From the NCBI GenBank assembly GCA_973895155.1, contig OZ316897.1, positions 2,867,416 to 2,931,415 of the forward strand: a DNA stretch of 64,000 nt, given 5' to 3'. A program made the translations under genes and the position numbers. Source of the DNA: Marsupella aquatica. Its lineage: Eukaryota > Plantae > Marchantiophyta. Shown in pieces: positions 1 to 64,000 of the stretch. The notes beneath the pieces are model-generated. The model had not been told where the DNA came from, ran no database searches, and was given only the letters and a program-made list of their open reading frames with translations. The first letter of the stretch is position 1. Each line of letters starts with the position of its first letter.

Positions 1-3000
1 ATAACTGGATCTCTAGTAAACCATTAAAATCATCATTTCTGAGCTAAGCAAGCGATCTCTACCTTTCAGTGGCTGTGATGTACGATGTCCAAGAGCTACG
101 GTGTCGTTGTCACCGTTGTGTTTCACATCTGTTGGAACCATCATGGAGGCATTGGCATCGCCGGCAACGGCATTTTCAATCTCCATCGCATTGCACATTC
201 TGTTTACGTGTAGCTCTGCGATACAATGCATGACTTCGTTGGTTGACGAATTGCAGACATTAGGAACAATATGAGAGCTTTCCAAGCATTCAGAAGTCTT
301 CACGATTTCTGGAAGAGACTGATTCACTCTGCTATAGTGTCCCATCAGTAGGTTTTCCTGACCTCTGTTATTCTTCCCCATCCTTCTGGTTAGCTGGTAT
401 CAATAGTTAGACTTAGCAATAACCTACCTCTGTTATTATACTTTCCCATTCCCTCACCCAAAACAGGTTTTAACAGGCACGTCCCGAAGTTACAAAGATC
501 TCCGAGGCTGGAATGGTTCTACTTGGGACGAGTTTGTTGCTGTGTGGAAGCGGGTTGGGTGTAGGACAGAACGAACTTCAAAGACTGAAAGAAAGAGATC
601 GGAAAATATATAAACGTCGTTCGAATGTCTAGAGAAAAGAATGACAACCGTGGTTGTACGAGGAATCCTACCAAGAAATTATGATTGTTGTGAGTAAATT
701 ACAGTACCGGGCATTCTAGGACCAGGTTCGGGATAACTACAGAGCATTCAAAGTAACCTCACCATCTGGCAGATTCCGCGACAGTCTCAGAGCTGTCTGT
801 TGCCTTTATAGTAGTTATAAAGGAGAACACATCAGCCCTTACAGTCTTTCCCAGCTCGAATCCCTGCTGAAGCTTTAACCACTACGTTTCATGGATTTCG
901 GAGCACATCCTACAAACGACAGAACCCTAAATATACCGAACCCAGCAAGGACTCACCTTTATACCGAGCTCCAAATCTCCGCTGAATTTCGTCGGCATTC
1001 GAAGCCTAAGACGTCGGCTGGTCAGAGAAGTCTCGTAAGCTAGCTCTGCAGACGAATCAGCAAAGAAATGCGGACGGGTCATGGAGTCCCCTGAAGCGAC
1101 CCTGGAAGGCAACCGTCGTAAAATTCAAGAATTGTGGCAGACTGCACGGATCCCCATAGCTGTCCCTCAACGCTACTCCATCCACAACCTCGAGGAAAAC
1201 CCTCCCGTTCCCAGCTGCTGCTGCTGCCGGATGGAGTACCATCCTCCTCCCAACGCCTTATTTCACGCAGCAATCGTCTTCATCAACATCGCCATTACAG
1301 ATCCGTCCACTGGCAAGACTTTGTACGCTTCAATAGTAATACAAATTAGGTCTCCTCCGCCTACAAGTATTCGTCAGCTTGCTTTGTCTGGAGTCTGGAC
1401 CTCCCGCGACCGAGCGACGACCGCACCACGCGAAAGCATTCCGAGCCCGACGTAAGATAACATTAAATGAGGGCAATTGCGAATCGGACTTAAGCAACAA
1501 AAGCAATCAAGCGACTAATAAGTCAAGTTCCCTGCACCGATACACCACACCGCCCGTTGCGATCAGCAACGCCAGAGCTGGAATCATGCCCGTCGCTCGC
1601 GCATATCGAACTTCACGGAGTGTGTAGTACTCAGGCAGCTGCAATTGCCGTCGAATGAATCGATAATACTCTCGGCAAGAATCATTTAGCAGACCGAACG
1701 GAGCTTCCGCCAAGTACAGATTTAGCAAACCACATGATATCACCGAGGCAGAGGAAAGGGAATTCGGGCAATGTCTTTGGGTGCTTCAAAGTTAATCTCG
1801 ATGACACACAGTAGTAGTTCAAGTACCATAGCTCCGAATCCCACGGAGAGAGAGCATCACACAGAGAACAAATCGAGGTTGGAAATTGCATCAGGACAAC
1901 CATTTCAAATTTCAAATGCCGGCCGAGTGATAGGGGATTTGAACTGCCGTTAGGTTCGGGTTTTCGCTCGGCCTACGTTCGGCTTGCCGCCGGCGTACCG
2001 ACGGTAGCACTTTGCGTCAGGAATGGGTGATGTATCAGTGTTTAGCAGAGAGAGAGAGGGCGCCAAAGTTTGGTTTACTGGTGATTAGTTTGTAATAAAA
2101 AAGGAATTATTTTAATTTATCGATAAGGGCAAAAAACCAACAGGGTGACTATCAAACCTGTACTTGGTTTCTTTTTTTTTTCTTTTTTTTTTCTTTTTTT
2201 TAAGTGAATGAGCCAATGGCCAAAAACTTTATTCCAAAATAATGGGCAAAAAGAGCCAACAAATAGCCTGCCTGGGAGGAGGAGGCAGGGAAGAAAAGAG
2301 ACAATTAGGGGAGGCCAAAAGAAGGGGCACTCCCAGAGAAACGGGAGAATGAGACCAAACTGCCTGTAGGGGGGGAGGCAGAGCAAGGGGGGAAAGGAGG
2401 GACCTCGGAGAAATGAGAGAAAAGAGAACCAGACAATCAATGCCCCGTCCAAAGTCGGAAACTGCCTGGAACCAAACTGGGAAAGTGCCTCCACCGATCA
2501 ATCACTGGCTGGCAATGAACAGAACGCTAGTCACCTCTGCACTTGGCGTGGATTGCCGGAAACATTAATTTTTATTAGCCCACCAATGGTGTGTTGCATA
2601 CTTACGAGTGCAATAGTGTTGTTGTTGAAGTCAGATTATCATTGCGGTCGGATTGCTGTTACGAAACAGGTTTCTGACATTAAAACTATAACTTGGTCGA
2701 AGTGTCACCCTGCATTAAATACCACTTCCAATAGGGCGTCTCAGAGTAGAGGTCGGGCCCGTTAACACCGGTCCATAACTTGGAAGTTACGGACTACTCC
2801 ATAAGGGTTATGGGAGGCCAAAACCGGCTCCCGTAATTTTGTGTCGTGACCCTAAGACGTAACCCGTGAACTGTAGCTAACGGGAGGGATGGCCCAAGTT
2901 GAAGCGCGAACACTGTATGCTTTTTTGAAGATCGTTCAAACTATGACTGATGCGGGCGTGTCATGCTCGGATTTTCAGTACTCCCGATCTGCATCTTCGA

Positions 3001-3337
3001 CTTGGAACTTGGTTCACTCGATCGCTAACTTCGACTGGGAGTCTTGGTTCACTCGATTGCTCATTTCGAGAGCACAGACAGGGCTTTGGTGTGGACCTAG
3101 CTGGGAGACGTGGGTGCATCGATTCTGGAATCGGCAGGCGATCGAGCTTGTGCAGGCGATTGAGCTTACGCAATCCAGAAATCCAGCGGGGCTGCAAGGA
3201 GCCATACATGCAGTGCCAGGTGAAGTCTGTTTTCTGAAGCTTGTGTTGTTGGAATGCATTTCGATTACTCGCTCATTCTGGTATATTTGTGCGCCGTGTT
3301 TCAACTGAGTAGTGCTACTGCATTGCAGAGTTTGAGA

Positions 3338-4024
3338 ATGGTTTCATGGACTACACTAGGCGAAGTGGAGGAAAGAAGGGCCGCAGGAGCCAATGAAGTT
3401 TTCTCCCCTTCTCTAGTGTGGGTAGTGAACTATGTGGCAACTAATCCCCATCCTCGTAGATTCGTCTATTTAGCTTGTCCTTACAGACTGAAAACAGGCC
3501 GAATGTGTGCGAAATCCCTTGAATTGGGACCCAAGTGTGACCACATGCTTCCAGGGAGGTATGCTTTCAGATTTGGTGTACGCATCGTTGACGCAATTCA
3601 TGGGGACGTGAAACCTGTCACTGCTCAAGTCTGGGATGTTGCAGAAATTCTCCTAGATTGTGATGCAATAAACTTTTCGATGTGCACAGAGCATGCCCAG
3701 ATCGAGTTCTTGCATTCGATTATGCAGGAGTCACCGAGGGTTAAGATTTGGCTATCTGTTTATGATTTTCAAATCAAAGTCCAGCATTTGACATTCTTTG
3801 ACGAACGTCCTGTAGTGCATCTCCCTCCCACCCAGGCATGCTTTGTTTCTCCACAGTGTAATGTGAAGCACAAGGAGCGAGTCACTCCACATTCCCCTAT
3901 AGGAAGCCACGGCAGCACATCGGGTAGCACACCAAAGAAAACAGACAAAAAACCAGCAAAACCTGTTGGAGAAGCTATAGAGGACCTCGTTCGGTCTTTG
4001 AAGTTTTATGATTTGGATGGCTAG
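3338..4024 (+). CDS. RPA1 C-terminal-like zinc-binding OB-fold (ssDNA-binding) protein
   Basis: FVYLACP..C.K.L....C.H....RYAFRFGVRIVDA...AQVWDVAEILL follows the Rep_fac-A_C pattern (YxAC..C.K...C...RY.l...i.D.tg...v.fd..ae.ll). First in-frame ATG at 3338. Confidence 0.6.
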   Translation: MVSWTTLGEVEERRAAGANEVFSPSLVWVVNYVATNPHPRRFVYLACPYRLKTGRMCAKSLELGPKCDHMLPGRYAFRFGVRIVDAIHGDVKPVTAQVWDVAEILLDCDAINFSMCTEHAQIEFLHSIMQESPRVKIWLSVYDFQIKVQHLTFFDERPVVHLPPTQACFVSPQCNVKHKERVTPHSPIGSHGSTSGSTPKKTDKKPAKPVGEAIEDLVRSLKFYDLDG

Positions 4025-4339
4025 TGTGTGTTATGTGTGCATATTTGTTTTGTGCCCTTTGGTACATCCGTCATAGGGAAAAATGTAACAGATTTTTATC
4101 TAATAATTGATTTACATCTTCTATTCTTGTCACAACAACCTATATTTGCTTACGACAATGAATTGCTCTCTGTCATTGGAATGTGATATATGTTTATTGT
4201 TGATGTTACTCTCTGTGTCATTTCATTATGCATGGATTCTTTTTATTCCAGAATTGGTATGAATTCATCTGACATGTTGCCTACTTCTCTAGTGTTCACG
4301 ATAGAACAATTCATTCCAACAACTCCTTGTGGAGAGACG

Positions 4340-5843
4340 ATGCCTCGACAATCATACCGACAGAAAGAATTGCAGGCTGTGCGTGATAAGTTGGTCTTGA
4401 ACATTCTTCTGGAAAGCTCAGATGATGACTTGCAAACCTCAGGTAGCGATGTGGACTCCCTAGATGAGTTCAGACTATCTAATTTGGATTCAGACCATGA
4501 TCTCTATTCATCAGATGACTCTGAGGACGAGGCCGACATTCTTGAATTGGAGGGGGCTCCACATGACCTGATGGAGACTTTGTATGCCATCATGGAGAGC
4601 ACCAGGTTTTTTGTTGACAAGAAAGTAACAAGTAAATCAAGGGAGTTTGCTTTACAGTATTTTGACAAGCTCCCTCCATTAATTTTTCGACAGATGACTC
4701 GGATGGACAAGGCATCCTTCTTTGCACTAGTTCACCTGATTGACCAGCACCCTGTTTTCTACAGCGACTCACAAAACCAACAGGCCCCCGTGGAGTGGCA
4801 ACTTGCTGTTATGCTTGATCGGTTGGGCCATGAAGGAAACGGTTCCTGCCTTAATCGATTGATTCCAACCTGGGGCGTAAGTAATGGTTCTCTATGCAAC
4901 TTCACAAATCATTGTTTCCATGCCCTGGAGGATGCACTGAAGGAATCCCTGACATGGCCTGCAAGTGCTGAACGCAAAGCAATTGCTCAAGAGTTTTCCA
5001 CAAAAGGTTTTCCAGGCTGTGTTGGGCTCATTGACGGTACCTTAATTCCTCTTTCTCAGCGGCCAGCAAACTCTGGGGAATGCTACTTTGATAGAAAGTG
5101 CCGCTACTCAATCAATGCCCAGGTGGTTTGTGACTACAAGCGAAAGATCTTATACTTATTCACTGGTAAGATGCTTTTAACATCTGACCTCATTCTCAAG
5201 GCTGCCGGTATTTTTGTATACCCTAGAGGTTTTATGTTTAGCAAACTAAGCTATGTTCACATGGGTTTGGTGTCTTGCAGGATTGCCCGGGTCCGTGTCT
5301 GATCTGACATGCTACAAAAGGTCATCGTTGTATCGCAATCAAGCTCAAAGGCATTTATTTAGCCGTGGTCAATATCTTTTGGGTGATAGTGGATATGAGC
5401 CCATGGATCACATGGTTTTTGCATACAAAAGAGCAGATACCAGCCAGGAGCGGGAGGACTTCAACATGTGTGTAGCAAAGTGTAGGGTAACCAATGAGCA
5501 TTGCATTGGTGTTTTGAAATCTAGGTGGCATTCCCTCAGAGAGATGCGTACCCAACTGAGATCCAAGAAGGAGATTGCCTGGCTAATTCGATGGATTATC
5601 ATGTGTGCACGATTGCACAATTTTGTCATTACACGTAATGACATGTGGACCGAAGAAGATTCCAAAATTCTTCTGGACAATGACTCAGATAGCGATGCAG
5701 AACGGGAGGAGCAACCTACTTTGCCAAACATTCGAAGAAGGCGTCCTTTACCACCTCGAACAACCTTGCAAACCATTATTATGGAATATGCACTTCAATT
5801 TCACAAGCAGCCAGGGGGCTGCTTGAATATGCGTAGCAACTAA
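4340..5843 (+). CDS. PIF/Harbinger DDE transposase (HARBI1/DDE_Tnp_4-like), 2 exons (4340-5165, 5281-5843), ~462 aa
   Basis: FRQMTRMDKASF, FPGCVGLIDGTLIP, YSINAQVVCD, GLPGSVSD (across the phase-1 GT-AG intron 5166-5280), YLLGDSGY, RVTNEHCIGVLKSRW, CARLHNF. DDE triad intact. Confidence 0.93.
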
Positions 5844-6455
5844 GTTCCACATTAGTGTAGAAGTATTACATTCTACCTCCCGAATCAATTATTTTGTAGT
5901 ACATAGCACTTGGCTCATCCAATCGATGACCTGGTGCTATCTTTGTATGTGGGAAATCTTCTGCAAATTGTTATAAATAAATCAGGAACTAGTGAGTTCC
6001 TTTGTATCTTGTCAAAAAACATGTGTTGTGCCAATTAAATTTTGTAACTGTGGTCTGCTCCACAATTGTTTTATACAAACTTGTAGCCAACAATCGCTGC
6101 ACTACTCAACTTCAATTTTTCCAACAACACTTTTAATTTCTTGCATGAACAAGGGATTGGGTGTACTTCTGCAAATTTTGGGGAGTTCATTTAGACAATC
6201 ATCTATCTAGTACGTAGGACATCAATCTGAATTACAGTTTAGAGTGTAGCCCATTATGCCTGGATTTACGTGTGTATGTGTTCAGAAGTTTCTTGTATGC
6301 ACAAATATGCTCCATAGTCCCTTCGGGTGCAAAATTATGTCATTCATACTTGTGCAAAACCGTGTCATTTATTGAAGATCAAGAATAATGATTGTGACAT
6401 TTATAGGAACCCACCATGTGACAACAATTACTCTAAGCTACATGTTATCCTGCAT

Positions 6456-7951
6456 CTACTCTACGTCTACAATGGGCAGCAATGTCCTAATCTCGTCAGG
6501 AGTCTTGGAGCTGCCAAAGAGTGTAGTCAACAATGCCATACGTTGAGCCGATTTTGACATCTCGACTGCATGATCTTGCTCAGCCTTAACCTTTTTAAGG
6601 GCATTTTCAGATGCAACCTGCTGTAGTACAAGCTCATGCTTCCGATCGAGACGTCGCTTTAGGAGAGCTTCTTGACGAGCCTCCAATCTAGCAGCACGAC
6701 GTTCTTCAAGGTCCTGCAGTTTCCACTTGTCTCTAGAGTGGATTAACTCTTTTCGATAGTCTGATTTTTGGGCGATCCTATCTGCATAGATTGCTGAGAA
6801 TGATGGTTTCCTGTTCTCTTGGGCACTCTTTTGCTGCCTATGCTGCTGTCTTGGTACCCTTCGGAGTTGGTGGCGGTCTCAGTGGAGTGGCTTGGACATT
6901 GTCCTTGCGAGGCTGCAAGGGATTGTGAGCACCAGTTGCACTGCCAGTGGGCAGAGGCCTAGTCTCCCCACTGTCCACATTCACATAATTCTTGCACTGG
7001 TGGCACTGACATGTATCAGAAACAATGTGGATGTTGTGTGCAGCAATACCCTCTAGGTGTTGCCAGAAATTCTCACGAGAGGGCGGGTTCCTGAGGGTGT
7101 CAGGCGTCGGTACATCTAGGGGACTGGTGTGCATCGATTCTACTTCTGATTGCACAGGTGTATCTGGAGCAAGGCAATCATGGAAGGAGTATTACTTTAA
7201 GCAAGGATATCATGATTCTAAAAGAACAAATGTCGCTCGCACATATTATGAATTGAGAAGCGAGTGGAAATGTCATTACAAGTAACATGTACGTCACATC
7301 TTCATTGCAACTAAGGCCACACTTTCTTACCTTCAAGGATGATAGTAGGGGTGTGAGCTGGGATAACATCTGGGTAAAGGAGTTCCTCGCCATATTGCGA
7401 GTATCCCTCGGTGTCACCTGACTCCTCCAGCAGGACCAGGTCAGTCTCATAAATTCCAACATCTCCAAGGACTTCTGGAGCAACATTGGGCCTCTCTCCG
7501 TAGAGGGTATGCATGCGCTCAAAGTATGGACAGAGTCGGTTCAACTTGTCCTCCAATGTAAGGCCCATTCTGAGGTCATCTTCGGTGAGGCCTCCACCCG
7601 ACTGGAACTTCACGTCTCTGGCATCCTTGTAACGCTTCACAATCGTTGAAATCTTTTTGTCAAATTGGGTGCAGTTATCTCTCGCGGAAATCCATGGTGT
7701 TGCAATGCAGCCAACATCTGACGGAAAATAGTGGCCTTGCTCTGATACTTGCCTCCCACCCTCGTCTTCTTGCCTGCACCGTGAATGGCATTGAAATTTT
7801 CTGGAATTTCCAAGTAGCTGACAATGAGCTCGTAGTCTTGGTCTTTCAGACGAAATTTGTCTGCCGTCTCCTTGCCCCTAGTTGGAACAGGTCATGGAGC
7901 ATTGAATGTTCCTCGACCTCTAACATATCCAGCGCTACCTGAATTTGCCAT
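6456..7951 (-). pseudogene. Harbinger partner (Myb/SANT-like DNA-binding protein with coiled-coil C-terminus), disrupted
   Basis: Convergent with the transposase. ATG at 7951; YLEIPENFNAIHGAG...KRYKDARD..SGGGLTEDD..LEDKLNRLCPYFERMHTLYGERPNV. In-frame TGA at 7892-7894, frameshift near 7642, intron 7164-7330, and another frame change near 6840. Confidence 0.75.
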
Positions 7952-9009
7952 GTGAGCTGAGAGGAATCGGTGAGCAGGAGGCGCAATCTGTTGAGCACTT
8001 GGACTCCAAGGCTGAAAATTGTAAAAAATCCCTAGCGAGATTGCTAAGCCCGTCACTGAATGCGAAGGTGCTGGAAAGCCAGAATCATCCTCAGAACACG
8101 ATTTCGGACCGACCGAGAAGTGTGTCGGAGTTCTCGTTTAGCCCGATCCCGTTTTTTTTCTAAGGCAATGCAATGACCGATAAAACTGGCAAAAACTCTC
8201 CGAAACGCCACTTTCCTCCATTGCATCGCCGCGGGAATGCAGGGAGCGATACGTGCATCGGGTTTTACATTCCGTCAGTGAAAAAGTCCGAACTGTGAGT
8301 AACTTGGTCCGAACCGCGTAATCCAGGAACGACCACGCACTAACCCAGGTAAAAGGGGAACTTAACCATGGTTAAGGGGAAATTAACCATGGTTTAGAGC
8401 GTCTCCTATATAAAGAGGAGCGGGCTGCCCATAAAATGTTTGCTTTCACCAGAGCAAATATCTCCTGACTGAGAGCAAATACCAAACTCCCATCAAGTCT
8501 TACATTCCTCCCAAGCGATTCAACTCTTTCTACCGAAAACCCGATAAATTTATCGGAACAGCCATTCCTGTTCAAGTTCTCCATGTAAGACTAACTAGTC
8601 ATTTAGTGTAAAATGTCCAGATCCGAGCGGACTGCGATAAATTTATCGCATTTTGCATTGCTCTGTTGCAATCATTTGATCCAGTGTGTTTAGAGAGGTG
8701 TTGCCTTCATTCCCATAAATTTATCGGAGTCTCCATTCCTTTCATGGAAAGAGGAGTAATTGAGAATCCGATAAATTTATCGGAGTTGTCATTTTTGTGA
8801 AAGATTGAATTCAGGGCTTAGGTGTTTGAGGAAGTCATATTTTCAATTCGAATGCGGAGTGCGATAAACTTATCGCATCCTCCTGTGAGAATCATTTTCC
8901 TTTGTTTTGTTTGGAGACTCATCTTCATCTTTGATGTCGCAGTGTTGTCGGGTTTAGGAGGCACAACGGAAGGTCAATTGCACTCCGTGGACAACAGGTA
9001 TTGTGACAA

Positions 9010-9339
9010 ATGGCTGTCTTCCTTGAAAATCATGTCAAACGTGCACGCCGGTTGTACAAGAGACTCGTGCGACTCAAAGTTCTCCCCATCGGTATAGGAG
9101 CATTGTGGATGGGTGGTACTGATCCTGGAGATAGGCAGAATCCTCTCCGCATTGAATTCTACGGAATGAATGATGTAGGAGTTCCAATTCGTTCGAGGTT
9201 GATGTTAACGGCGTGTTTACATTCTTTGGAGTTTTCTTGTAACTATTGTTGTCGTCGTCTTGATAACAAGTACCACAAACAGGCTCACTTCTGTTGTAAG
9301 ATTTGGAACGAAGACCCTTGGGTGAACCTTTCACGATGA
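9010..9339 (+). CDS. Small Cys/His-rich orphan protein (109 aa)
   Basis: ATG-initiated ORF in the TE cargo cassette with CNYCC and HFCC motifs. No recognisable family. Confidence 0.4.
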   Translation: MAVFLENHVKRARRLYKRLVRLKVLPIGIGALWMGGTDPGDRQNPLRIEFYGMNDVGVPIRSRLMLTACLHSLEFSCNYCCRRLDNKYHKQAHFCCKIWNEDPWVNLSR

Positions 9340-9527
9340 GTGTTTCGACCTTTTCATTGAGGCGCATCTTGGAAGGACATATTTAAATAAACAAGTCCTA
9401 CCCTTGCGCAGCGAATATAATACGTCACGAGTCCTAATCGTTAAACTGTCATGCAGGGTTGGTACTGTGTTTGGTTACACCTGGTGATTGAAGGTATTTT
9501 TATTGGTGGTTTTGGTAGCTCTGCTTC

Positions 9528-10076
9528 ATGGCTGCATCGGAGAATCTAATCGTTGCAAAGATGGGATCCGTTTTAGCCCACGAGCGTAGGAAATATATTC
9601 GAGGAAAAGTACCCGGTGTGGAATGCGGAAGTTTGTTGAATGGACTTCCCGATGAACTCGTTGAATCTCACATTTGGCCCCTCCTAGCCTTGTCTTGCAC
9701 ACAAGATGAACACCTTGGCCTTGACCTAAAACTTCTACCAGAAGAACGACTGACTCGAATGAGAACAATCATTTGTCTTGGAGCCACCTCGAAGAAATGG
9801 AACCATCTTGTTGTTGGTACACGATTTTGGGCGCTATTGAAATATGCAGTCCGTGAGATCAATGACATAAACAAAATGCTCGCAAGCATTCCTAATGCCG
9901 TCCTTCTCTCAAACCTACATATTGCTAGGGTCTTCCGAGAGGAAACTCATTTCCTCCCTCCCATAGATATGCTTGGGTGCTTCTCGTATGACCGATTAGA
10001 TGCATTTCTTAGAGTTTGGGTAAATCTTGGAGAAAGCGGGAAGCGGACAATTCTTGCATGGCATGGACGAGTCTGA
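9528..10076 (+). CDS. F-box-like protein (182 aa)
   Basis: LLNGLPDELVESHIWPLL...IICLGATSKKWNHLV matches the F-box consensus LPxEl..Il..L...l..l..vsK.W..l, with an insertion. Confidence 0.6.
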   Translation: MAASENLIVAKMGSVLAHERRKYIRGKVPGVECGSLLNGLPDELVESHIWPLLALSCTQDEHLGLDLKLLPEERLTRMRTIICLGATSKKWNHLVVGTRFWALLKYAVREINDINKMLASIPNAVLLSNLHIARVFREETHFLPPIDMLGCFSYDRLDAFLRVWVNLGESGKRTILAWHGRV

Positions 10077-10368
10077 GTGGATGAGGCATTGCAGCGAACA
10101 TCCGATAAATTTATCGCACTCCTCATTCCTCTAGTCGATTTTGGGTGCTTGTAAAGAAACACTTTGAATATAATTGACTCTGCCTCCCCTGACTTCGGGT
10201 TGTGTGGTCCAGAGTGTATTTTTTTGCGCCTCTTCGGACGATTAGCTGACAAGTGCATTGGCTTCACAGCCCGTTATACAAGGTACTGTAAAGTTGGATG
10301 AAACTTGTAGAATTGTAATTAGTATGTTCTCCAAAATTTATTCCTGATTTCTATTCGGTGATCAGGCC

Positions 10369-11082
10369 ATGCTCGAGCGACGCATTTTTGTACCCTTCCC
10401 GGATCCTCCAGAATGGGGGAATGGAGCCATGCTGGACCAGCTAAGGAGGCTGGATGAGTCACTAATTTTAAAGATATGCAGGCTGGTAGTAAAACCATTT
10501 TACCATAACGCATTTCACTTCTACGTAGATCAGGTAGGGGGAGAAATTTATATTCGGTGGGATAGATATGTTGGATTTTCTAGAAGAGTTATCCTACTCT
10601 TTCTGAAAACTGGTGCAGTAAGACATTTTATACTCCACTATTGTCATGTTGTGAAGGGCAATCCTGCTTATGAGCCCGAATTCTATGTCGACAACAGACG
10701 TAGAGCATTCGATGAGATTCAAGATGTGATTGACGAGCTGGACAATCCTCTTGCCACCGAGTTTTTTATTGACACTGGTGGGAAACTATATTCATACAAG
10801 ATTCGTCAACTCCCCCCCCAGCCGGTCTGTGGGCTCTTTAACTTGATCTATGTAAGTTGCCTGTGGACGAACGTCCTTGCCAATGGTGAGATCTGTCCAT
10901 GAAGAATAAATGCTTGTTGTGACATTCCGTCACGCCGGTATTCAGTAGCAGTAGTGAATCCTGAGACTGGTGAAGTTGATTTCCATTGGCTGTGGGCTTA
11001 TGATCATTGCGTCACTCATATTCCCCAATGGCCCAAGAAGCGGATCGAACGCTTCGCTCTGGCGAGGTTCAACTATGATTAG
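10369..11082 (+). pseudogene. Orphan protein (~237 aa) with one in-frame TGA
   Basis: ORF 10369-10902 continues open in the same frame after TGA 10900-10902 (RINACCDIP...FALARFNYD) to TAG 11080-11082. Confidence 0.55.
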
Positions 11083-11302
11083 GGTTTAGGTTTAGGGGTT
11101 AAGGTTTTGGATTTAGGGTTCCGTAGCTGATTCTTCGACCTGTACACTCGGCCGTCAATTTAAAGAAGGCTCACTTTTGCGATAATTTTATCGGTCTCTT
11201 TGTCCTTGTGTGATGAGATGTCGTGTCCACATGTGCTATGAGATTGGCGGCGATAATTTTATCACTCTTTGCATTGGAATTTGTTTATTTACAGACTTTT
11301 CC

Positions 11303-14300
11303 ATGGCTGCTAGTGGAAAGAGTGGATCTGCTGAGGCAGAAAGTCTCATGACAAGCCTCACCAATGCAATTTGGACAAGTGAAGACATTTGTGAAGAGAT
11401 CAAGTGTATCAAGAAGTCATGGTACTTCCATGACGCCAGATTACAGTCCACGGGTTTCGAAGACTGTGTTACCCCAATCCTTTGGGTCCAGTTGCAAAAA
11501 TTGGTGAAGGTTAATGTTTCGTATGGCCCTGTCATTGCTATTGCCGTCGTCGAGTTCATGGTTGGCCACGGGGAGGGAAAAGTGTTGACAGAGGGCCTTA
11601 GTTTCTTGACAATGTGTGGGCGCAAGGGTTTCACATCTCTCATTGTTACTCTCGATAACTTTGATGAGAAATCGATGGACAGTTATCCAGAAGATCCCCT
11701 TGTTGCCGATGTTCGGGCAACAAGAGAGATGAATGTTATGGGTTCGGCTTGGATCAGCCAGTATGTGCAAGATTGTGATGCCATCATGCTTCCAAGGGTG
11801 AACGCAGAGTACAAGAGACTTGTGGGTGAAGAGTTCAAACCTGTCCGCAAAATTGTTTTCAAGAAACCAGGTTCAAGTGGAAGCGGTGGTTCTAATGCCG
11901 ATAAAATATCGGGGCGGAAAGAACCATTGCAATCCTCTACACATATTGACGTGGACGAACCTACAACTTCTGGTCGGGTTTCGGGAAGTGGAAAAGGGAA
12001 AGGGAGAGGTAGCGGCAGGGGAGATGCCGCGGGAACCTCTGACGGTGGGAAGAAGAGCCAGGAAACTAGCGGTAGTGGGAGAGGCCGGGGCAACCATCGA
12101 GGACCATCCGTTAAACCAAGCGAAAGTAAAGGATCCGAGGGATCCGGGCCATCTGGTTCTGGACTTAGCACAAAGAGGAAGAGGACTGGCTGGACTGAGA
12201 CGGTGGCTGCAGAAGTAGATAGAGCTCCGTCAATTCCATCAGTTCTAGTCGCGGTTCCTACGGCGCCATTGGTAAGTACTACGTCGTTGTACTGTTTAAC
12301 AAACATGAAATCCGATAAAAATCTCCCTGTTTATTTCCTGAATTGCGGATTGTGGAGTTATGTTGAACAAATGCGAACTCCGATAAAAATCTCGCAGTTT
12401 CTTTCCTTAATTGAATTTGCAACGCTTTTGTAGGCTGATCAGGAGGAGGAGACGGCTCTTTCGATGTATGAGACGGACGCGATCAAGGCAGAGCTCAGTC
12501 TTCTAATGCAACGAAGGGTGCAAAGGACAACTGTGCTTCTGCATGTCGACAATCTCATATTTGATGAGGAGGGGGATTTGACAACTTTGATTAGACCAGT
12601 GGATAGATTGCATGTGGAAAATATCAAGATACTTCTCATGAAAAACCCCACCAACTTCAGTGCCCCGTTCGTGCTGTGTGTGGATCCGAAGGATTGTCCC
12701 ACAACCGCAGATTGGGACATCCTGAAGTCAAGGGTATGGAAGTATAGAATTATTGGAGGGAATCATGGTGCTCGGGCAAAGTCCGAGTTGTTTAAAATGT
12801 ATGGGAAGCAAATATATGGTGAGCTGGAAGCTTGGGTTTATGCTGGGCTTACGAGATCCGAGGTCCGAAAGTTAGGCTTCCAGCATAACTATGACCAGGA
12901 GTATCGGAAGAACATGACTAAAATTGACCAAGTTCGCGCTTGTCACAATATTTTCCTTGAAATGGGTGTGGGCTCGACTAAAGATGTCCGCGAAGCATGT
13001 TGTCAAGAATGCATGATGGAGTACACGTCAGGAGTTCGTGACTCCATGGCCAAACATGATCCGGCTTTCCAAATTGCTTTCCGAACAGGTGAAATTTGGG
13101 ATCTTCAGGAGCAGATTTTCCAGATGTGGGAGAAAGGTATTGTCTTAGGACAACCCAAAAAAATTGTGGCAACGACGAACGCAAAGGGAAAGGTGAAACC
13201 TTTGACGGTAAGGGAGATTAAAATGAATAAACTTGCTGGTGACCTCAACTTAAATTCATTTCGAGGTCTCCAAGGACTGTCAAATAAGGAGCATGTCAAG
13301 CGTCTCTTGAATAGGGTTATCAGGAAGGTGATCACTTTGGATCAAATGCACAAGGAAGGTGAGAAGTTGAAAAAGCTTGCCAAGGTGAAGAAACTATTTT
13401 TGCAGATATCTGGTCAGCCAGATTGGGCAACATGCAGAGAAATGTTTCCCAACAAAACAGATGTCTCGGTCCTTGGCATATGGGCGGAGAAATTGAGTGA
13501 CGCGGTAAGCATTCCTCTCACAGCATGCTCTATCGCGAGATTTTTATCGGCTTTAGCATTCCTTTGTTGGTTTCTAAGCGATTGCATCTATCAGCTAGCG
13601 TGCTCCATCGCGAGATTTTTATCGGCTTTAGCATTCCTTTGTTGGTTTCTAAGCGATTCCATTTATTGGCTAGCGTGCTCCATCGTGAGATTTTTATCGG
13701 CCTTAGCATTCATCTCACGCTATTCTAACTGTAGATGTGTCTGACATTCTTACAGCTGAAGATTAATTCAAAAAGGAAAAGCAAAGTGGTTCCGGCTGTC
13801 ACTTATAATTCTGCGGGGGAGGTTATTGTTCCCTCAGCTGAAATCCCTTATGTGTTTAATAATTTTGTGCTTGCTGCAATCGATAAGTACAATCGGCTGA
13901 GGTCCTTAGGCGAGGGCACAGCAGAAGTGTTTGAACAAACATGGAAAAATGCAGACGGGGATTCTTTTCCCTACTATCTCCATGTTGGTGATGTTTGAAT
14001 TTTGGATTCTTTTGTTCAGCCAAGGGCTTACACCCTTGCGGTTGCGGATATTCCGTATGGTTTTAATGCTCCTGGTTCGGAGTTTGATGAAGTGGCCTTC
14101 ACAGAAAAGGACATTTTAGACATGTTGACAAGTTTCTCAAAGATGACGACCGCTAAGCAGTGGAGGTTTGTTGTGATCCATTCACTACAACAAACGCATA
14201 TGGTGATGTCTGCACTGGAGAGTGTATGCAACTGTGGGGTCGAGGCTGGAATCTGGGAGAAGACTAACATTCATGAGCGTCCCGTTGGAGCTCGATTGGC

Positions 14301-14868
14301 ATGGGGTTTTGAGAACTGGTCGATAGGTTTCTATAGCGAGGAAGGCATTTGGAACATGAACATGTACAATTTCCAACCGGATGAGTCTCGCGTCAATATC
14401 ATCAAGGTTCCATGTGTAACCAAGAAGTCCGTTGATCCGTTGGGATTTGTTGTGAACCCATATCAGAAGCCTGTTGGTTTAGGGGCTTGGTTTGTTTCCC
14501 ATTTCTCTAAGAAAGAGGATTGGATTATTGATCTTTGTTGTGGAACCGGATTGACATTAGCTGCTACGCTCCTCAATTCTCGCCAGGGTTGTGCTGTTGA
14601 TAAGAGTTCTGCGCAGATTGGTTTTGTAAAATCTCGGATCATGATTCTGGAGTCAAACTGGAATTTATATGAAGAATCCCTGATTGAAGGGCACGGCGTT
14701 GAAGGTCATGAGATTCAACCACCAATTGCAGGCCAATTGGGTGTACTCGGGACATCGACTTACGTAGTTGAGGTCGTGAAGGAGACCAAAGAGGAACAAG
14801 AAGAAACTGAGGAAGAGCCTCCCAGAACACCAAATGAGGATGATCTCAACGACATGTTATTAGATTAG
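11303..14868 (+). pseudogene. ParB/Srx-like domain + beta-class amino DNA methyltransferase (N6_N4_Mtase-like) fusion, 3 exons (11303-12271, 12434-13504, 13756-14868), ~1050 aa, one premature TGA
   Basis: Two phase-0 GT-AG introns join the ORFs in frame. ParB signature IRPVD..HV..I...P.V....YRIIGGNHGARA. MTase motif IV ADIPYG is followed by PYQKPVGL..FSKKEDWIIDLCCGTGLTLAATL..RQGCAVDKS (motifs X/I). In-frame TGA at 13996-13998 in GDV*IL. Confidence 0.85.
13520..13715. repeat. Intronic 75-bp tandem repeat (~2.6 units), each unit with a GCGAGATTTTTATCGG palindrome variant
   Basis: Motif copies at 13535, 13610 and 13685 inside intron 2 of the ParB-MTase gene. Confidence 0.9.
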
Positions 14869-15104
14869 TTGCGTGTGCTCGTTAGGATAATGTCAATCAC
14901 CAATGAAGTTGTCGATAAATTTATCGACTTCTATATTCCATGAGGAAGAACCTTTGTCACATTTATTAATGCGATAAATTTATCGGACTTTGCATATATC
15001 GGACTGTCGCGGTGTTCCTGCTGGGGGAATGGAGTTGTCGATAATCTTATCGGACAGCATTGTATTCTCTAACTGGTTTGTCATTGCAATTATTTAAAAA
15101 AAAA

Positions 15105-15430
15105 CACTAGTACATATTAAGCTGATTTCCGATGCTCAATTTTTGCGAACAATCGGCGTCCGATTCTTTTAGCATCGGAAATTCCGATTATCAAAAAATG
15201 GCAATATGCCATACTCTCGGCTTTGGATATCTTCATTTCCGATATAATTGACAACGGAACCTTTCCGATGCGTTAAAAAACAGATCATATCCGTTAGAAA
15301 ACACATCGGATCCCTCAACAGAAACTTTGATTGATATGTCTGATGTTTTTTGTAACGAAAATGATGTGCGTTACAATATTGATCGGAAACTTTCCGTAGT
15401 TAATAATAACGGATATTATATCTGATTGTG
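15105..15430 (+). mobile_element. Possible CACTA element left end with TCCGAT subterminal repeats (truncated)
   Basis: CACTAGTAC at 15105 followed by many TTCCGAT/ATCGGA motifs. No matching right end found. Confidence 0.4.
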
Positions 15431-15435
15431 CTAAC

Positions 15436-15615
15436 ATGGCAAAGTCCGATGTTGGGAGAATGGGAAAGTCCGATGCTGGGAGTATGGGAAAGTCCGATGC
15501 TAGAAGAATGGGAAAGTCCGATGCTGGAAGAATGGGAAAGTCCGATGCTGGGAGTATGGGAAAGTCCGATGCTAGAAGAATGGGAAAGTCCGATGCTGGG
15601 AGTATGGGAAAGTCT
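15436..15615. repeat. 24-bp tandem minisatellite (~7.5 copies, ATGGGAAAGTCCGATGCTRGRAGW)
   Basis: Directly visible periodic array. Confidence 0.95.
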
Positions 15616-16137
15616 GGTTATGACAAAAAGAAAATTTTTGATTGTGTTAGAATGAAAAGTTTTGATGTGTTAGATGGGGTATGTGGTTGCACCGACATAC
15701 TCTTCCCAAAAGATGCAATCATTCTTGCATGCATGAATAACTTCATACTTGAGGCAAATGGACTTGAGTGTTGTTTTTGCCTCATTCCAAGACCCAACAT
15801 ATTGTTCCCTTACGAAAATATGTGCTCAACATGCCAAGTCCAAAATACATCATCTAGAAGGAGGTTGCTTGTCCCATGTAGTCTTTGTTGCAAGTCCAAC
15901 AACAACATAGTTGATAAAAGATGAGACAATCAGGAGCCATTGACGCTGAGGCTTTGGAAGGACCAAAATATCATCCATAACTAATAAGCCATAATTATCC
16001 CATATCAAATCTAATGAAGGAGGGCTTTACTATCGATGAATGACCCCTGCCAGATTTCTATTGGTTTCTCCTAGGGGAATGTAATAGGGTAACTAGAATA
16101 GGTCACTTGATGCAAAGATCTAATCTCATGGCCGACT

Positions 16138-18250
16138 TCAATGCCATTTGTGGTGCGACCCAATGTACCGAACAAAATCCACCGTCTCCCCCCAATCGAT
16201 TGTCATTGAAAGATGTTTGGCATGGAATACGGACCGAGCACTTCCATCTTCGAGTACTCTAGTAATCCGAAATTGTTTTTGGGCACTTATGCCGTGGAGA
16301 GTACGTAGAACCTGACCATCCATATCCTTGTCATTTGCTTGATCCTTGTCTGACACAAATTTCTTGAAATCGGCAACCTCGTCGACGAAAAATATCTTTG
16401 TCGTAGGATTGTAGGATTCCTCTATGATTGCTGAAAGAGTGTCCAACCGGAAAGCTTTCCGCTTGTTCAATTTTGAAGAAAACTTGCTAAACATTTGATC
16501 AATTTGATCATGGGTGTGCCCCACCAATAGGAAACCAACCTTTATTTTCTGGAAAACACCTATCTCCACCAACATATTCAAATATGCCATAAGATATTTA
16601 TTCTTGTTTTCCCAAGCTGTGTTATCAAGCTGGAGGTAAAGCACTAGAGGGAGCATACCTTCCCAGGTATTCAGAATATGCTGGATAACGTGGATGGTCA
16701 GGTTGCTATCATTGTGAATATTTGGATAGTTCAAAAAAACATTTGAACTTAATTGTTTGTTGAAGATCAAACAACCCACTACGTGTACGGGGATGAAATA
16801 CTTTTCATCCATATTCTTCGGACATCGAATGAAATGAGGTAACTCTATCTTCTTTTGATCCATTCCATCAATACAGATGCCCAAATATTTCTCCGGACTC
16901 TTGTAACATTTGCTCCGGTGCTTTGCTAACTTCTCCCTCTCGACTGCTTGTGCCTTCCGATGCTCGTTTAGCAATGTTGAGAATTTTCCTACAACAATAA
17001 AAATTTTTAGGACAAAACATGATAACCGCAATGTTGAACCCTGATAGCGATAAATTTATCGGGTTCAGTATTCAAACACGAGACCGTAATGATAAACCCT
17101 GACAACGATAAATTTATCGGGTTCAGTATTCAAACACAAGACCGTAATGAAAAACTATGACAGCGATAAATTTATCAGGTTCAGTATTCAAACTGTTCAA
17201 ACGATATATTCACTCACATGGCCAAAGAAGAAGCACATGAATACTCAACCCGATAAAATTATCGGGAGTAACACACAGGTTTAGAAATTTACTCTTTTCT
17301 GCTTCGAGTGTTGCCTTGTCACAGAGTGCTTTGAATTCAGTACACGGGGCGCAGGTGGAGAAACGGCTCCTTTTGGGGATGCGCACGTGAGGAAACTCCT
17401 TGTTCCAAATGCGAACAAACCATGAATATGTCATGCCTTGTTCTTGGCGCATTAGAGTTTCGGACTGGAAGGCATCAAAAACTTCTATTTTTGTCCAATT
17501 ATCACGTAAATGAAAGATATCCTTGTTGGGGAGACTCTCGACATTTGTGGAAAAAAAATCATCCAGCCATTGGACGAGACCAAGATGTGCGGGTGATTTT
17601 TCTCGACAAACTGTACCAATCTGTATCCGAGAAAACATGTTCTGCGAGATTTTTTGGAGACGATTATTTCCCAATGAAAATAATTTCTTAAAACCACTTC
17701 GACAAAAGGATCTACCGCTAACTGAGTAACCACTTGCACCAGCATGCCCACCCTTCACACATCCTCTTAGAAGGACGTTCTTCTCTGGGTAGGATAGCCC
17801 ATAGTAATAAGTGAGTTGTTTCGTCACGGCTAGCAGACCCAAATTCCGCAGACAGTAATTATCACAACACGAATACTTATGAATTTCTCTCATTTTGTTT
17901 CTATTCAATTTGTCATTTATCACATTGTCTTTCCTAGTAATTCGGTCCCTATCTTTTTTACTAGGCTCATTTGACTTCTCTACAACCTGAAATCCGTTCA
18001 TAACATTGGCATTTTCGGGTCCTTCAAGTGCCTCGCGAATAGATGCATCACTCTCTGCTGAGCTACCATCCTCTATAGATCTCCTTGACGCATTTAGAGG
18101 GGCACTGAATAGACGACTATAGCTATTCTCTTCGACAGCTCCTTCTAAACATTCAGACACAACTTGTGCTATTATATCGGATTCTCTATCTCCTTCCTCA
18201 TCTTCGTCCTCCGATGCACTCGACTCATTTGAAACACAATTGGACTCCAT
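16138..18250 (-). CDS. Sola-type (DUF7869-like) DDD transposase-like protein, 2 exons (18250-17293, 16988-16138); possibly 3'-truncated and with an upstream exon
   Basis: CCDNYCL, FCRSGFKKLF, FSTCAPC, ICIDGMDQ, LYLQLDNTAWENKN, FLLVGHTHDQIDQMFS. The phase-1 intron 16989-17292 joins EAEK-R-KFSTLL. Confidence 0.78.
17033..17195. repeat. Intronic 58-bp tandem repeat x3, each unit with CGATAAATTTATCG or a 1-mismatch variant
   Basis: Motif copies at 17047, 17105 and 17163 inside the Sola-like gene intron. Confidence 0.9.
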
Positions 18251-18939
18251 GGCTCTCTATACATAACCCGAACGCCACTAAGACCTCTCCTCGATACTTG
18301 GAGCTTGGAACCAATGACAGTCCGCCCTTGAGAACTTGGAGATTCTGGATTCGCACGTGCAGTCCCAACGACTCCGCGAGCTGCTGGAAAATTGAGCACT
18401 TGTTCACCACGATTCCCACGGACCATTCGAGAAAGGGCCAAGTCTGGACTTCACAGTCCGATTCCCTCACTTGCTCGCACATCCAGTCCAGGCAATGCAA
18501 AGACCGATCGCCGTATCGGTCTTTGTACTTCTGTGTCCCGATCCTCACTCGGAGACTGAAAGATCCATCGTTGAACTTGTGTTGAATGTGGCAACTTGAA
18601 TGCCGACTGCGATACACGTATCGGTCGCCGGATACCCTCTCCATAACCCGGGATGGATGGCCTGAAGCGACGTCTCGGACCTAAACCTGGGATTGAAAGT
18701 TTCTCATTTCTTGGCGATGGAACGCTCAAGAGACGACGCTTCTCAGGTTTACTAGGCGACACATAGTAAGCACTGGGCTCAGGACCAGAACTTGCATCAG
18801 AATCTGAGTCAGAGATTTCGGGCACTATTTGCTGTGAGAGAGGTAGAGCTTTAAGTATGCGACTTGGAAAACAGCGAGCGACAAGATTAGGAGAGGATTC
18901 AACTGAACTGGAAGGTGAATCTGTGTCTGATTGAGACAT
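18172..18939 (-). pseudogene. Ser/Pro/Arg-rich low-complexity ORF, possibly a 5' exon of the Sola-like gene, with one in-frame TGA
   Basis: The MSQSDTDSPSSS... frame continues through TGA 18451-18453 into ORF 18172-18441. Confidence 0.35.
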
Positions 18940-21900
18940 GGCTATCCGAGACACTATGGGGCTTTGCATTCCTCCCACAATCAGGGAAAACGAAAGGCTC
19001 AACGGACAGAATGTTGCTCCAAGAACACAACTCCCAAAACTCTACTCTCGATAATGACACCAAAAACTTATCGGCGGTGGCCCTTTTATAGTGTCTGTTG
19101 AGGGGTTGGCCCACGTGTCCACTTTTGATTGGCTGTCACCCTAAACGACAAAATAGCAGAAAAGGGTATATTTCTTGGATTTCCAATTTCATTCTCACAC
19201 GTGCATCGTGGCAAAATTATATAGTTTTGAAATTGAAGCGATAAATTTATCTGATGTTGGTATTGCAAAAGTGGTTCCTTCATATGGAAGTTGCAATTTT
19301 GAAATTGAAGCGATAAATTTATCTGATGTTGGTATTGCGAAGAGTTTTCTTCATATGGATAGGAATTTTGAAATTTAACCGATGAACCGAAGGATCTTAG
19401 TATTGTCGACTAGTATTTTTGTCGCCCGTAGTTTTCGCGATAATTTTATCGGACTGCGCATTGCTGTTGAAAGAATGGCATGTTGACTATGGTCACTTGC
19501 GGAGGTAACTGGTCAATTGCGGAGGTAATTGCAAGGTAAATTTGATGAACCGTGCAGTAATTCTTATCGACTGTGATGTAAAATATTTTTGGTAAATATC
19601 CAAAAACTGAGAAACTTGAGATTGGGTCGGAGTTTTTGTGGCTCAAATCCGGAGTCCGATACAGTTATCGCACTTGGCTCGAAACATGGATATGGATTTA
19701 TAGATAAGACCTTTCATATATCTTCGGAGAGCGTGAATATGAGGTCGAGGAGAAAGTTTTTCGGATCTAATTGTTCCTTGGTAATATGAATGTTTGTTAG
19801 CATGAATTTCATTGGTTTTGATCATTATTAAATTTGTTGTTTCAATCCGAACTCCGATACGAATTACATTATTTCCCCAAAAACGCGTTTTTGATGAAAA
19901 AAACTGCCGATTTCGCGAGATTCGGCGGAAAATAAAAATACACTTCTCGTTTAGAGGAAATAGTTCTCGTTCGGTCCAAAATCGTGTTTCAGGCTTATAT
20001 GTTGGAGCAGCGGGGCTATCTGGAGCCATCGTCATCACAGGTAATTTTGTGCTTCAATCTGTGATTGCCTTATCTTCGACGCACAACGATCTCTGGACAT
20101 AAATTTCTTGAGCTTTGCAATGCTGAAATCAGGGCTCCATGAAGTACATAGGACGCACCAGTTTGAATTCATTTTAAAGTTTGGTTTGAACTCCATCATA
20201 TTCGGGATGTGCAATGGAGGGCATCAGTTGCTTTGGACTTAGAACGGCCAAGAATCGGGAGGACGTGGCTTCTACAAAAGCCTCCTGACAGCCCGTGGTC
20301 CGAGAGGGAAGGTAAGGGCGCTCAGCTTTGAGCGGGTATTAACCCGTAAGTCAAGCCTAACGGAGCGGGTCAAAGCTGCCGCCCTGCCCAAGTTGGAACC
20401 CGTAACTTCATTTACGGGATGAGCAGTAATACCGCAACTTTTTGCCGTCCCGCTACTTTGAGACGCCCTAATGAAGTAAATGGTTGCAATGTGAGAGCAT
20501 CAGAGCAAGGTGTAGAAGGTGTAAATGGACAGGGAACAGTTGGGCCAAGAGTTGGGCCAAGAGCTGAAGTGAGAGCTAGACCGAGGCTGATTTAGACTAC
20601 GGGAACACGGTGTGCATAGTATGGGGCGTAAAGACAATGACACATGTGGCTGACAAGGAGGGGAGGGGGGGCAGGAGGGGGGGAAGAGGAGGGGAAGGTA
20701 AGAAAGGAGCATGGTTGGGGAGGCTGGGAAGAAAAAACAATTAAAATGAAAAGGGGGAAGAAAGAAGGGTTCACTGTTTTATTATTATTTTCTGCCCAAT
20801 ATAAGTTTTTTGCAAGGTGTTGTTGATGGGGAAGGCTTAGATAGAACACCTGTCCAAATCTTATGAGAAAAAAACTGTCTAGTAGTGCCATTTTGGTTGC
20901 AAAGAACATTAAGCCAAGGGGCAATGCAAATATAAATCAATAATGAAACAAAAACAAAAAAAAGGTCCATGCAAACAAGAGAAATAGGTCAGATGGTGAA
21001 TAGAAAATATAATAGCATGCATGCAGGCAAGGATAAGTAAAGTTGAAATGAGAGCCAAAAAGAAGCTACTCTAATTATGTGATATTGTTTCTAGTCTGAG
21101 CAAATTGAACATTTTGTTGCATCAATTAAAGATTGGGCAGTCTACTCAATTCAAAGTCTATCAATCCATAAATTGCTCTATTCTAAAGCTTATAAAGCTA
21201 TATCAATTTGGCTGATGACTTATGAAATGCAATAAAATTTCACCCTACTTGATTTTGGATTCCAATGACAAGTCCACGATAAGGCCTATGATTGCATTAC
21301 ATCAGTGATTTTTGTCACAAACACAAACAATGATATTTACAATGGCAAATACACATCATAGTTTGTGATTATTGCAACAAAACAGTTAGATCTAGGAATG
21401 GTGTAAACTTATGGCAATTGGAAATCAACATGCCAACTAACGAAGAGCACTGGCACAAAAATAACCTCTTGTAGTTACCATTTTTATTTGCATTTTGAAT
21501 TACAATTTAAATTATATCTTTATACTAGTAAACTCATTCACTTGAAAATAAACAACGACTACCTGTAGTCATTGGATTTTATTGATTGGTTGATGCACTT
21601 CCTGATGCACTTGAGCAATCAATGGTAACAAACTAAGAAGATGGTAAATGACAATGCAAAATGGTCACAAGAAAATATTCATGTCATTGGATTTTATATT
21701 GTGACAAATGAGATCAAATCCTTATAATTAACAATGACAGTAAACACATACTTGGATTTCATAGAGTGATGGATGAGATCAAATCTTGATAATTAATGGT
21801 GACCATGTGCACTTTAAACCAACCATACTTTAAGTTTTCCTTTAAGTTTGTCTTTCTTTTTATAATTTTTATGATATTGTTTTAATGCTACTCAAGTAAG

Positions 21901-60678: not shown

Positions 60679-62261
60679 TCTACATAAAAGAGGGTGTCGA
60701 GGTTGTCTGAGACGCAATCCTAGCCATTCAAGGGCGTGCCATTCGAAGGCCAAAGTCTACTTACATGAACTTTGGGGACAGAATAGCCAGCCGTTAGTGA
60801 CCGTACAGTACTCATGCGCTAGTGGGTCCCATTTTCTCTAATGTGTCCATCCCGTTTTATCAAAATCTCAAACTACCTTTTCACCTTTGTTTAAAGCTCG
60901 AATGCACAGATTGATCCATTTCAGTGATCTTGCATTGATTTTATTCAAACTTGCCACTGAGCTTGACGTATTTTGGATAAGGTTTCTATGTTTGCCCTGG
61001 GTTTGCAATTATTTTACCCTAACGTACCCATCATTCATGCTGGGTTTGCAATTATGTTATTCTGACCCATCATGCAGGAACAAGTATAGGGTTTTGGAGT
61101 TTAGAGTAAGGCCTATAAATTTTTGGGGAAGAACTTTAGAAGCCTTTTAATGAAATTTTGAGTACTTCCACTAAACACATGGCTCCTAAAACTAATTACA
61201 AGCTACTCCTAGAAATTATAAAGTATACATACCATGATCTACATAACTCACTCTAATAATTTCATGGTGTCTAGGTTTCAAAAGTGAAGAGTCTATACCT
61301 TGACTCTAGGGCTCCACGTACCAGAATCTGTGGTTTCAAAAGTGAAGAGTCAAGACCTTGACTCTAGGGCTCCACATCAGCATTTTTAGTGGCAAAAATT
61401 AGCTAGATTCCACCTCCCCCAAAATCCTTAGCCACTTTTGGCTAAAATTAGCTACTATTTTGCTGGCTCATTAGATAGTGTTTCACCTAATCCCAGGTGC
61501 CATTAACCAGAATCTAGCGGTCGGCCTTAAATCTAGGGAGATCTGATGGTCAGGAAAATAATTGAATAGTGAATCTTCTGAGCATCTTCTCCCTCACACA
61601 CTTTACATTGGCCACTCTGGCTAAAAAGTGAAATCCTTAAAAAATACGCTGCTCCACGTACCAGAATCTGTGTAGATGGAAAAAAGATGAACATCATTAT
61701 GTATCTCTAAATAATGATTAAGTTTTATTATTATTCAATGAATATGCCTTCAGGCTAGTGAATATGTTTTATAATATATATATATAATTTTAGAGTTTAG
61801 GGCTTTAATGCTTTCTGCTTCAAAAACATTCACTGTAGCTAAAATAACGAGCAAGACTGGATGTTCGGTTGGGTGGAAGTGGCTTATTCCTTGTTGGGGG
61901 ACATGTCCGTTGTCCCTGTATTTGTCTTTTGTTCCTCTTACAATAAAGATTCAATTCACATCGTCTGCTTACATATCGCCAATATTAGAGATATTTGTAA
62001 AGTGACAAATATTGGGGCTACTCGCCTAGGGTTGAAGTTAACTAAGGATGAGCCGGTAGAAGTGGAACTCCGGTTAAGCGTTTCCATTACAAAGCAAACA
62101 AAAACAGGATGATAAGTTTTTCTTGAGGGAAACGCTCAAAAAAACTTTCCCGTCCCGAATTGATTTTCGACAAGCTGGGCAGTCGAAAGGCAAAATGTGC
62201 GGGCAGACATTGAACGTAGCTCAGTCACTTGCACTCACTGGCCATGCAGTCAGTGGAAAAC

Positions 62262-63803: not shown

Positions 63804-64000
63804 AATCCACTTAGAGATGTATGGGCAGTAGGCAACATTTTGTTTCAGTTGAGACCCCATGCTGATGAAAATACTGCGTCAATCGTGTCGTGCGGCAAAT
63901 ATGCTCTAAGCAGATAGATGGTTTCAATGTACATGATTTTCATGAACAAGATTGTGTCCAAGATGTTATTTCCCGTTCGGATCCTTTGAACTGTTTATTT

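Follow-up and report, generated by a model that had tools for sequence, protein, structure and literature searches.

Does a 17.7-kb stretch of liverwort DNA lying between the two ends of a single transposon represent one giant element loaded with cargo genes, or two elements, one inside the other? The question is raised by a 64-kb window of the Marsupella aquatica genome (contig OZ316897.1 of assembly GCA_973895155.1); the window is the whole stretch that was analysed, and coordinates given without a locus name are positions in it. A first-pass annotation, made from the sequence alone, had read the interval 2733–20469 as a single giant gene island, a PIF/Harbinger-superfamily transposon with Pangu-like termini that carried single-stranded DNA (ssDNA)-binding, F-box and ParB-methyltransferase genes and a second transposase gene as cargo. 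Our analysis indicates that the locus very probably consists of two nested cut-and-paste transposons: a Pangu-type Harbinger of about 5.8 kb that was hit by an 11.9-kb Sola-like element.

We begin with the outer boundaries, which are real and non-random. The outer element, including its insert, measures 17,737 bp (2733–20469). Its left terminal inverted repeat (TIR; 2733–2749, plus strand, AGGGCGTCTCAGAGTAG), which begins with AG, is identical at 16 of 17 positions to the reverse complement of the right TIR (20453–20469, minus strand, AGGGCGTCTCAAAGTAG), which finishes with CT. The trinucleotide AAT lies directly outside both repeats (2730–2732 and 20470–20472), forming an exact target-site duplication (TSD). 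Scanning the entire window for this TIR with up to three mismatches returned only two sites, compared to a chance expectation of 0.17, and two sites were reached in none of 100 shuffles. The window holds 13 copies of the motif CCGTAA/TTACGG, five of them no more than 200 bp from one of the outer ends, at 2787 and 2831 on the left (the subterminal stretch 2787–2836) and at 20344, 20400 and 20412 on the right. The termini, the duplication and the subterminal motifs reported in the first-pass annotation were therefore all recovered, and its count of roughly nine genes between the ends is about right if the open reading frames (ORFs) in the ORF list are counted as genes.

A repeat search within the outer element revealed a second inverted repeat, at 8095–8126 (plus strand) and 19957–19988 (minus strand), whose arms agree at 27 of 32 positions. 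Among pairs in 2733–20469 whose arms are separated by 3 kb or more, this one alone reaches at least 27 of 32, and its score was matched in none of 30 dinucleotide-preserving shuffles, which peaked at 25. TCAG lies directly outside the two arms (8091–8094 and 19989–19992), so that a second TIR pair and a second TSD, the latter of 4 bp, are directly visible at the locus. They delimit an inner element of 11,894 bp (8095–19988). Short repeats of the form ACGAGAA(C/G)T, in both orientations, were also observed next to the TIR at both inner ends (8095–8160 and 19925–19988); they are candidates for the sites at which the transposase of the Sola-like element binds.

Everything that had been called cargo lies inside these inner ends, save a Cys-rich ORF at 3254–4024, which is outside the inner module and part of the Harbinger itself. 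Since the module is enclosed by ends and a TSD of its own, the supposed cargo belongs to the inner element. Cargo carried by a giant Harbinger would have no transposon ends of its own, but the block from 8.1 to 20 kb has its own 27/32 TIRs, the TCAG duplication, a DUF7869 transposase gene and all of the palindromes described next, and the reading as a single gene island is not supported. The observed locus matches the nested insertion that the same annotation had named as speaking against its proposal.

A 14-bp palindrome, CGATAAATTTATCG, is confined to the inner element. A pattern scan allowing up to two mismatches found 19 copies in the 64-kb window, where 0.23 were expected, and all of them fall within 8095–19988, in spacers and introns between 8542 and 19670. 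Neither the Harbinger arms nor the remaining 46 kb of the window contain a single copy. Some palindrome-bearing units were seen to be tandemly duplicated, at 13522–13711 (units of 75 bp), 17025–17193 (58 bp) and 19225–19386 (approximately 72 bp).

Taking out the insert (8095–19992, comprising the inner element and one copy of its TSD) leaves a 5,839-bp Harbinger in which the Cys-rich ORF (plus strand), the transposase gene (plus strand) and a partner gene (minus strand) follow one another. We compared this arrangement with Harbinger relatives from the liverwort Calypogeia fissa. Using tblastn, we found the same order of third ORF, transposase and partner gene in one C. fissa element (L001; 8190–20486 of CBCUJL010000001.1), and transposase followed by partner gene in another (L002). 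In the three C. fissa relatives examined (L001–L003), there was no tblastn match to any inner-element protein. L001 has TIRs agreeing at 16 of 17 positions (AGGGGGTGTCAAAGC..., beginning AGGGGG) and ATT on both flanks, adding a second ANT duplication in the lineage. Blocks homologous to 7621–7867 and 20299–20401, which lie on opposite sides of the insertion, are separated by 797 bp in L001; the corresponding distance in the window is 12.4 kb with the insert in place and 534 bp after excision. The spacer at the insertion site is too diverged for base-level alignment with C. fissa, and only the coding and subterminal blocks align, so that sequence similarity establishes collinearity across the insertion site but no exact empty site.

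The converse arrangement was found in another liverwort, Riccia sorocarpa (GCA_046195345.1). In two of its loci, L009 and L010, a DUF7869 transposase gene is accompanied by a single ParB-methylase gene, collinear with the two corresponding ORFs of the window, and by numerous copies of a palindrome specific to the locus (TGTATGCGCGCATACA in L009 and GGCAACYCATGCGNCGCATGRGTTGCC in L010); neither locus shows homology to Harbinger. By sequence comparison, then, Harbinger relatives exist that are free of the inner genes, and a module of the inner type exists that is free of Harbinger. The two Riccia loci share with the inner element the DUF7869 protein (42–48% identity), the ParB-methylase protein (27–30%) and the presence of element-specific palindromes; they differ from it in that the palindrome sequence is different in each locus and in that the two genes are divergent in Riccia but convergent in the inner element. 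Candidate TIRs and TSDs for the Riccia elements all proved to be artefacts of palindrome copies. Separately, the transposase genes of two DUF7869 loci on different chromosomes, L004:8310-13077 and L009:18064-22101, are surrounded by the same palindrome, GACGTCCATGANNCTCATGGACGTC. Because L004 shows no ParB or methylase match within 10 kb, palindrome arrays may go with the transposase and not solely with ParB.

In its general form, the locus resembles nested insertions elsewhere, in which an inner element with intact TIRs and TSD breaks an outer one whose halves, when rejoined without the insert, line up with relatives. It departs from the usual case only in that both partners belong to DNA-transposon groups that are rarely annotated in plants.

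Several observations weigh against a nested insertion and should be set beside this evidence. Self-BLAST found no second copy of either element in the window, and exact-pattern searches of Joint Genome Institute (JGI) metagenome contigs returned no match to the inner TIR or to the reconstructed empty junction (8083–8094 joined to 19993–20004). The independence of the inner element accordingly rests on its own TIRs and TSD and on its architecture in other species, and not on further insertions. At the protein level, the Harbinger relatives share only about 60% identity with the outer element, and homology does not extend base by base over the insertion site. L001 is itself 12.3 kb long, with about 7 kb between transposase and partner gene left unexplained, and its size means that large Harbingers do exist in liverworts. 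Finally, the link between DUF7869 and Sola1 is a putative one, drawn from the TSD and from the architecture shared with an Ectocarpus element. The 7-kb stretch of L001 holds a 467-amino-acid ORF (13569–14972) that matches no Pfam family; it may be a nested insert or real cargo.

Additional searches for copies and empty sites were made around the outer element. The two flanks share no repeat usable as a paralogous empty site, and tblastn of the interval 62000–64000 showed no similarity to the element's proteins within the 2 kb available there. We also sampled 31-mers from the outer arm (2601–8600) in five DNA sequencing runs from three studies: 79–81% of them were present in the runs of one organism and 21–54% in those of a second. 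A near-identical Harbinger copy or allele may exist in the second taxon or accession.

Among the alternatives, the one that survives best, although we consider it unlikely, is that the composite moves as a unit, with the full 17.7 kb having been mobilised by the Harbinger transposase after nesting and inserted at the AAT site. Both outer TIRs (16/17) and the AAT duplication have been preserved, and the Harbinger transposase shows no break. Moreover, among the giant transposons of Ectocarpus, nested insertions are often fixed among multiple copies, implying transposition after nesting (PMC12477816). Against this, the window contains no second 17.7-kb copy, the insertion separates the partner gene from the upstream terminal region, and autonomous Pangu elements average only about 3.5 kb (PMC4482050); even under this scenario, the cargo would still stem from an independent transposon. 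An extended version, in which the composite is still mobile at 17.7 kb and the Harbinger, having gained a ParB-methylase/palindrome self-recognition module and a second transposase by nesting, spreads both, is a slimmer prospect still. If true, small transposons could grow into giant ones in this way, taking over epigenetic machinery from another element.

We regard as very improbable a scenario of genuine capture, in which the module is integral to a giant Harbinger family and the inner repeat and its TCAG flanks are coincidental or an internal regulatory structure. In its favour, a single outer TIR pair with an exact TSD encloses all the genes, and L001 is large as well. However, chance falls far short of explaining a 27/32 inner repeat flanked by identical 4-bp sequences, the module encodes a transposase of its own from another superfamily, the Harbinger relatives have none of the module genes, and the module type stands alone in Riccia. 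That the outer ends are chance matches, or derive from two different Harbinger copies, is barely conceivable: only a single copy is seen and a 17-bp TIR is short, but two sites against the 0.17 expected, their inverted orientation, identical AAT flanks, common CCGTAA motifs and a gene order shared with L001, which has a comparable TIR pair and an ANT-type TSD of its own, all speak for one element.

Having weighed these alternatives against the nested insertion, we turn to the identity of the two transposons, starting with the Harbinger. Its transposase gene (4190–5843, plus strand) comprises two exons, at approximately 4340–5212 and 5274–5828. A Pfam search of the window's own ORFs detected DDE_Tnp_4 (PF13359) directly in both ORFs that cover the gene, 4190–5302 (1.2e-5) and 5253–5843 (2.5e-19). 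The predicted protein is collinear across the two exons with residues 1–497 of a 499-amino-acid relative (P0002), with no breaks. Its closest relatives, 58–66% identical, were found in Calypogeia fissa and Riccia, both liverworts, and carry PF13359, PF04827 and PF01609.

Upstream of the transposase lies the conserved third ORF, the Cys-rich ORF at 3254–4024 (plus strand), whose conserved part spans approximately 3338–3760. It shares 52% amino acid identity with an ORF of C. fissa L001 that is likewise upstream of the transposase. The ssDNA-binding label given to it in the first-pass annotation, and with it a proposed likeness to replication protein A (RPA), is neither supported nor refuted: there was no match in Pfam, in a phmmer search of the PDB or in an atlas of protein clusters, and an AlphaFold2 model with a predicted local distance difference test (pLDDT) score of 33 was unusable for a fold search. 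The partner gene, which is the second ORF (6838–7867, minus strand, several exons), has a minus-strand counterpart at the corresponding place in L001 and L002, as seen by tblastn and blastn, and matches no Pfam family or known domain. In classical Harbingers, the second gene encodes a Myb/SANT or MADF DNA-binding partner. Between the insertion and the right TIR lies the right subterminal region (19993–20452), severed from the rest of the Harbinger by the insertion; it holds the three right-hand CCGTAA motifs, and its block at 20299–20401 matches the right subterminal region of L001.

With a DDE_Tnp_4-type transposase, short TIRs and a 3-bp TSD, the outer element has the features of the PIF/Harbinger superfamily. 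Pangu, a group of PHIS (PIF/Harbinger-ISL2EU-Spy; Han et al. 2015, PMC4482050), is defined by a 5'-ANT-3' TSD and by TIRs of 11–40 bp that usually begin with AG or GG, and its autonomous members encode two ORFs, of which the second lacks recognised motifs (PMC4482050). The outer element has an ANT duplication (AAT) and a 17-bp TIR beginning AGGGCG, and shares with Pangu the DDE_Tnp_4 transposase and the motif-free second ORF. It differs in being longer (5.8 kb compared to the average of about 3.5 kb) and in having the extra conserved third ORF upstream of the transposase, and no bryophyte is named among the Pangu hosts in the text of PMC4482050. These sequence features support its assignment as a PIF/Harbinger-superfamily transposon with Pangu-like features, as the first-pass annotation had proposed; the likeness to Pangu is one of TSD, TIR and ORF features and not of clade placement.

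The inner element contains two large genes in convergent orientation. The first is its transposase gene (16138–18250, minus strand), with a DUF7869 exon at 16138–17031, detected directly by Pfam (3.5e-48), and an N-terminal exon at 17210–18250. Both exons match Riccia DUF7869 genes, and the transposase has 82 homologues with up to 90% identity. The second transposase gene of the first-pass annotation thus exists, but it belongs to an independent inner element and is not Harbinger cargo.

The second gene is a ParB-like/DNA-methyltransferase accessory gene (11210–14868, plus strand), delineated by fold, Pfam and collinearity and comprising an N-terminal ORF (11210–12433), a ParB ORF (12464–13744) and a methylase ORF (14002–14868). 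The N-terminal ORF has a 28% identical homologue upstream of the ParB ORF in locus L006. The ParB ORF went unseen by Pfam and PDB sequence searches. An AlphaFold model built from a 16-sequence alignment (mean pLDDT 73.6) was compared with the PDB using Foldseek, and its top matches were all ParB, Noc, KorB or Spo0J (E 1.4e-5, approximately 280 aligned columns, template modelling (TM) score up to 0.62). The model therefore supports a ParB-like fold for 12464–13744, in agreement with the original label. The family of this ORF includes 157 representatives at E up to 0.001, among them proteins of Riccia sorocarpa and Chara braunii. In the family alignment, an invariant GGNHGARA occupies the position where canonical ParB has an arginine-rich cytidine triphosphate (CTP)-binding box.

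The methyltransferase label is clear in relatives and weak in the window itself. ORF 14002–14868 matches N6_N4_Mtase (PF01555) at 9.8e-5 and 22.8 bits, below the Pfam cut-off of 26.7, and its relatives P0127, P0110 and P0122 pass that cut-off. Motif IV of the methylase reads DIPY, where the canonical form is DPPY. The ParB and methylase ORFs are together collinear with one Riccia protein, P0127. The closest relatives of the inner proteins, at 78% identity for ParB and 90% for DUF7869, yielded no termini; some of them lie on short contigs.

The remaining inner ORFs are less informative. Three small co-oriented ORFs (9010–9339, 9528–10076 and 10369–10902, plus strand), which occupy 9010–10902, match no Pfam family. 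The second of these had been labelled F-box, which we could not confirm: besides the lack of a Pfam match, F-box-like clusters in the protein atlas scored only 0.83–0.84, below the level at which matches were counted. In ORF 15436–15924, we observed a 24-bp tandem repeat (7.5 copies with 90% matches, at 15436–15614) that encodes MGKSDAG(R/S) repeats.

To which superfamily might the inner element belong? Sola transposons encode DDD transposases, have a 4-bp TSD as their hallmark, can exceed 15 kb and are present in moss (PMC10741241); the 4-bp TSD is also given as a Sola feature in PMC3627910. Their TIRs range from 11 bp to more than 1 kb. The inner element has a 4-bp TSD (TCAG) and TIRs of 32 nt agreeing at 27 positions. 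Its transposase matches DUF7869 alone in Pfam, and no mention of DUF7869 was found in the literature searched. The closest published counterpart is Sola1-1_Ec32, a 21.5-kb element of Ectocarpus that encodes a ParB-like and DNA methyltransferase gene on the strand opposite the transposase (PMC12477816, 2025); similar ParB-like/methyltransferase proteins are cited there for transposons of green and red algae. Because of the 4-bp TSD and the architecture it shares with Sola1-1_Ec32, we infer that the inner element may belong to Sola1. Both are giant TIR transposons (21.5 kb in Ectocarpus and 11.9 kb here) with the ParB-methylase gene opposite the transposase. The inner element differs in its host, a land plant (liverwort) and not an alga, and in the DIPY motif IV of its methylase; its dense private array of 14-bp palindromes is absent from the text of PMC12477816.

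Taken together with what is known of the two families, these features suggest how the locus could have formed. A Pangu-type Harbinger would have inserted first, at an AAT site. The Sola-like element would then have inserted upstream of the partner gene, approximately 230 bp from its first mapped coding exon, duplicating TCAG and probably separating the partner gene from its upstream region. By analogy with its family, the Harbinger transposase, probably together with the partner protein, would recognise the AG...CT TIRs and the CCGTAA repeats and insert at ANT. The DUF7869 transposase, in turn, would act on the AACACG...CGTGTT ends of the inner element and move it by cut and paste, making breaks staggered by 4 bp. 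For the ParB-like/methylase-like protein, binding to the private palindromes is probable, given its ParB and helix-turn-helix (HTH) fold, the strict confinement of gene and palindromes to the same element, and the different palindrome found at each related locus.

The finding is mainly a correction of annotation. Taken for a single element, the locus would rank as a Harbinger of record size with an extraordinary cargo; read correctly, it is very probably two known kinds of transposon, one nested in the other. It indicates that a Pangu-type Harbinger, with an ANT duplication and a conserved third ORF, is present in a liverwort genome. It also fixes, to the base, the ends and the 4-bp TSD of a liverwort element of the DUF7869/Sola-like type that carries a ParB-methylase/palindrome module, and the ParB-methylase module has so far been published for algae. 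As the palindrome system is strictly a property of the inner element, the locus would allow a sharper test of self-recognition between ParB and palindrome.

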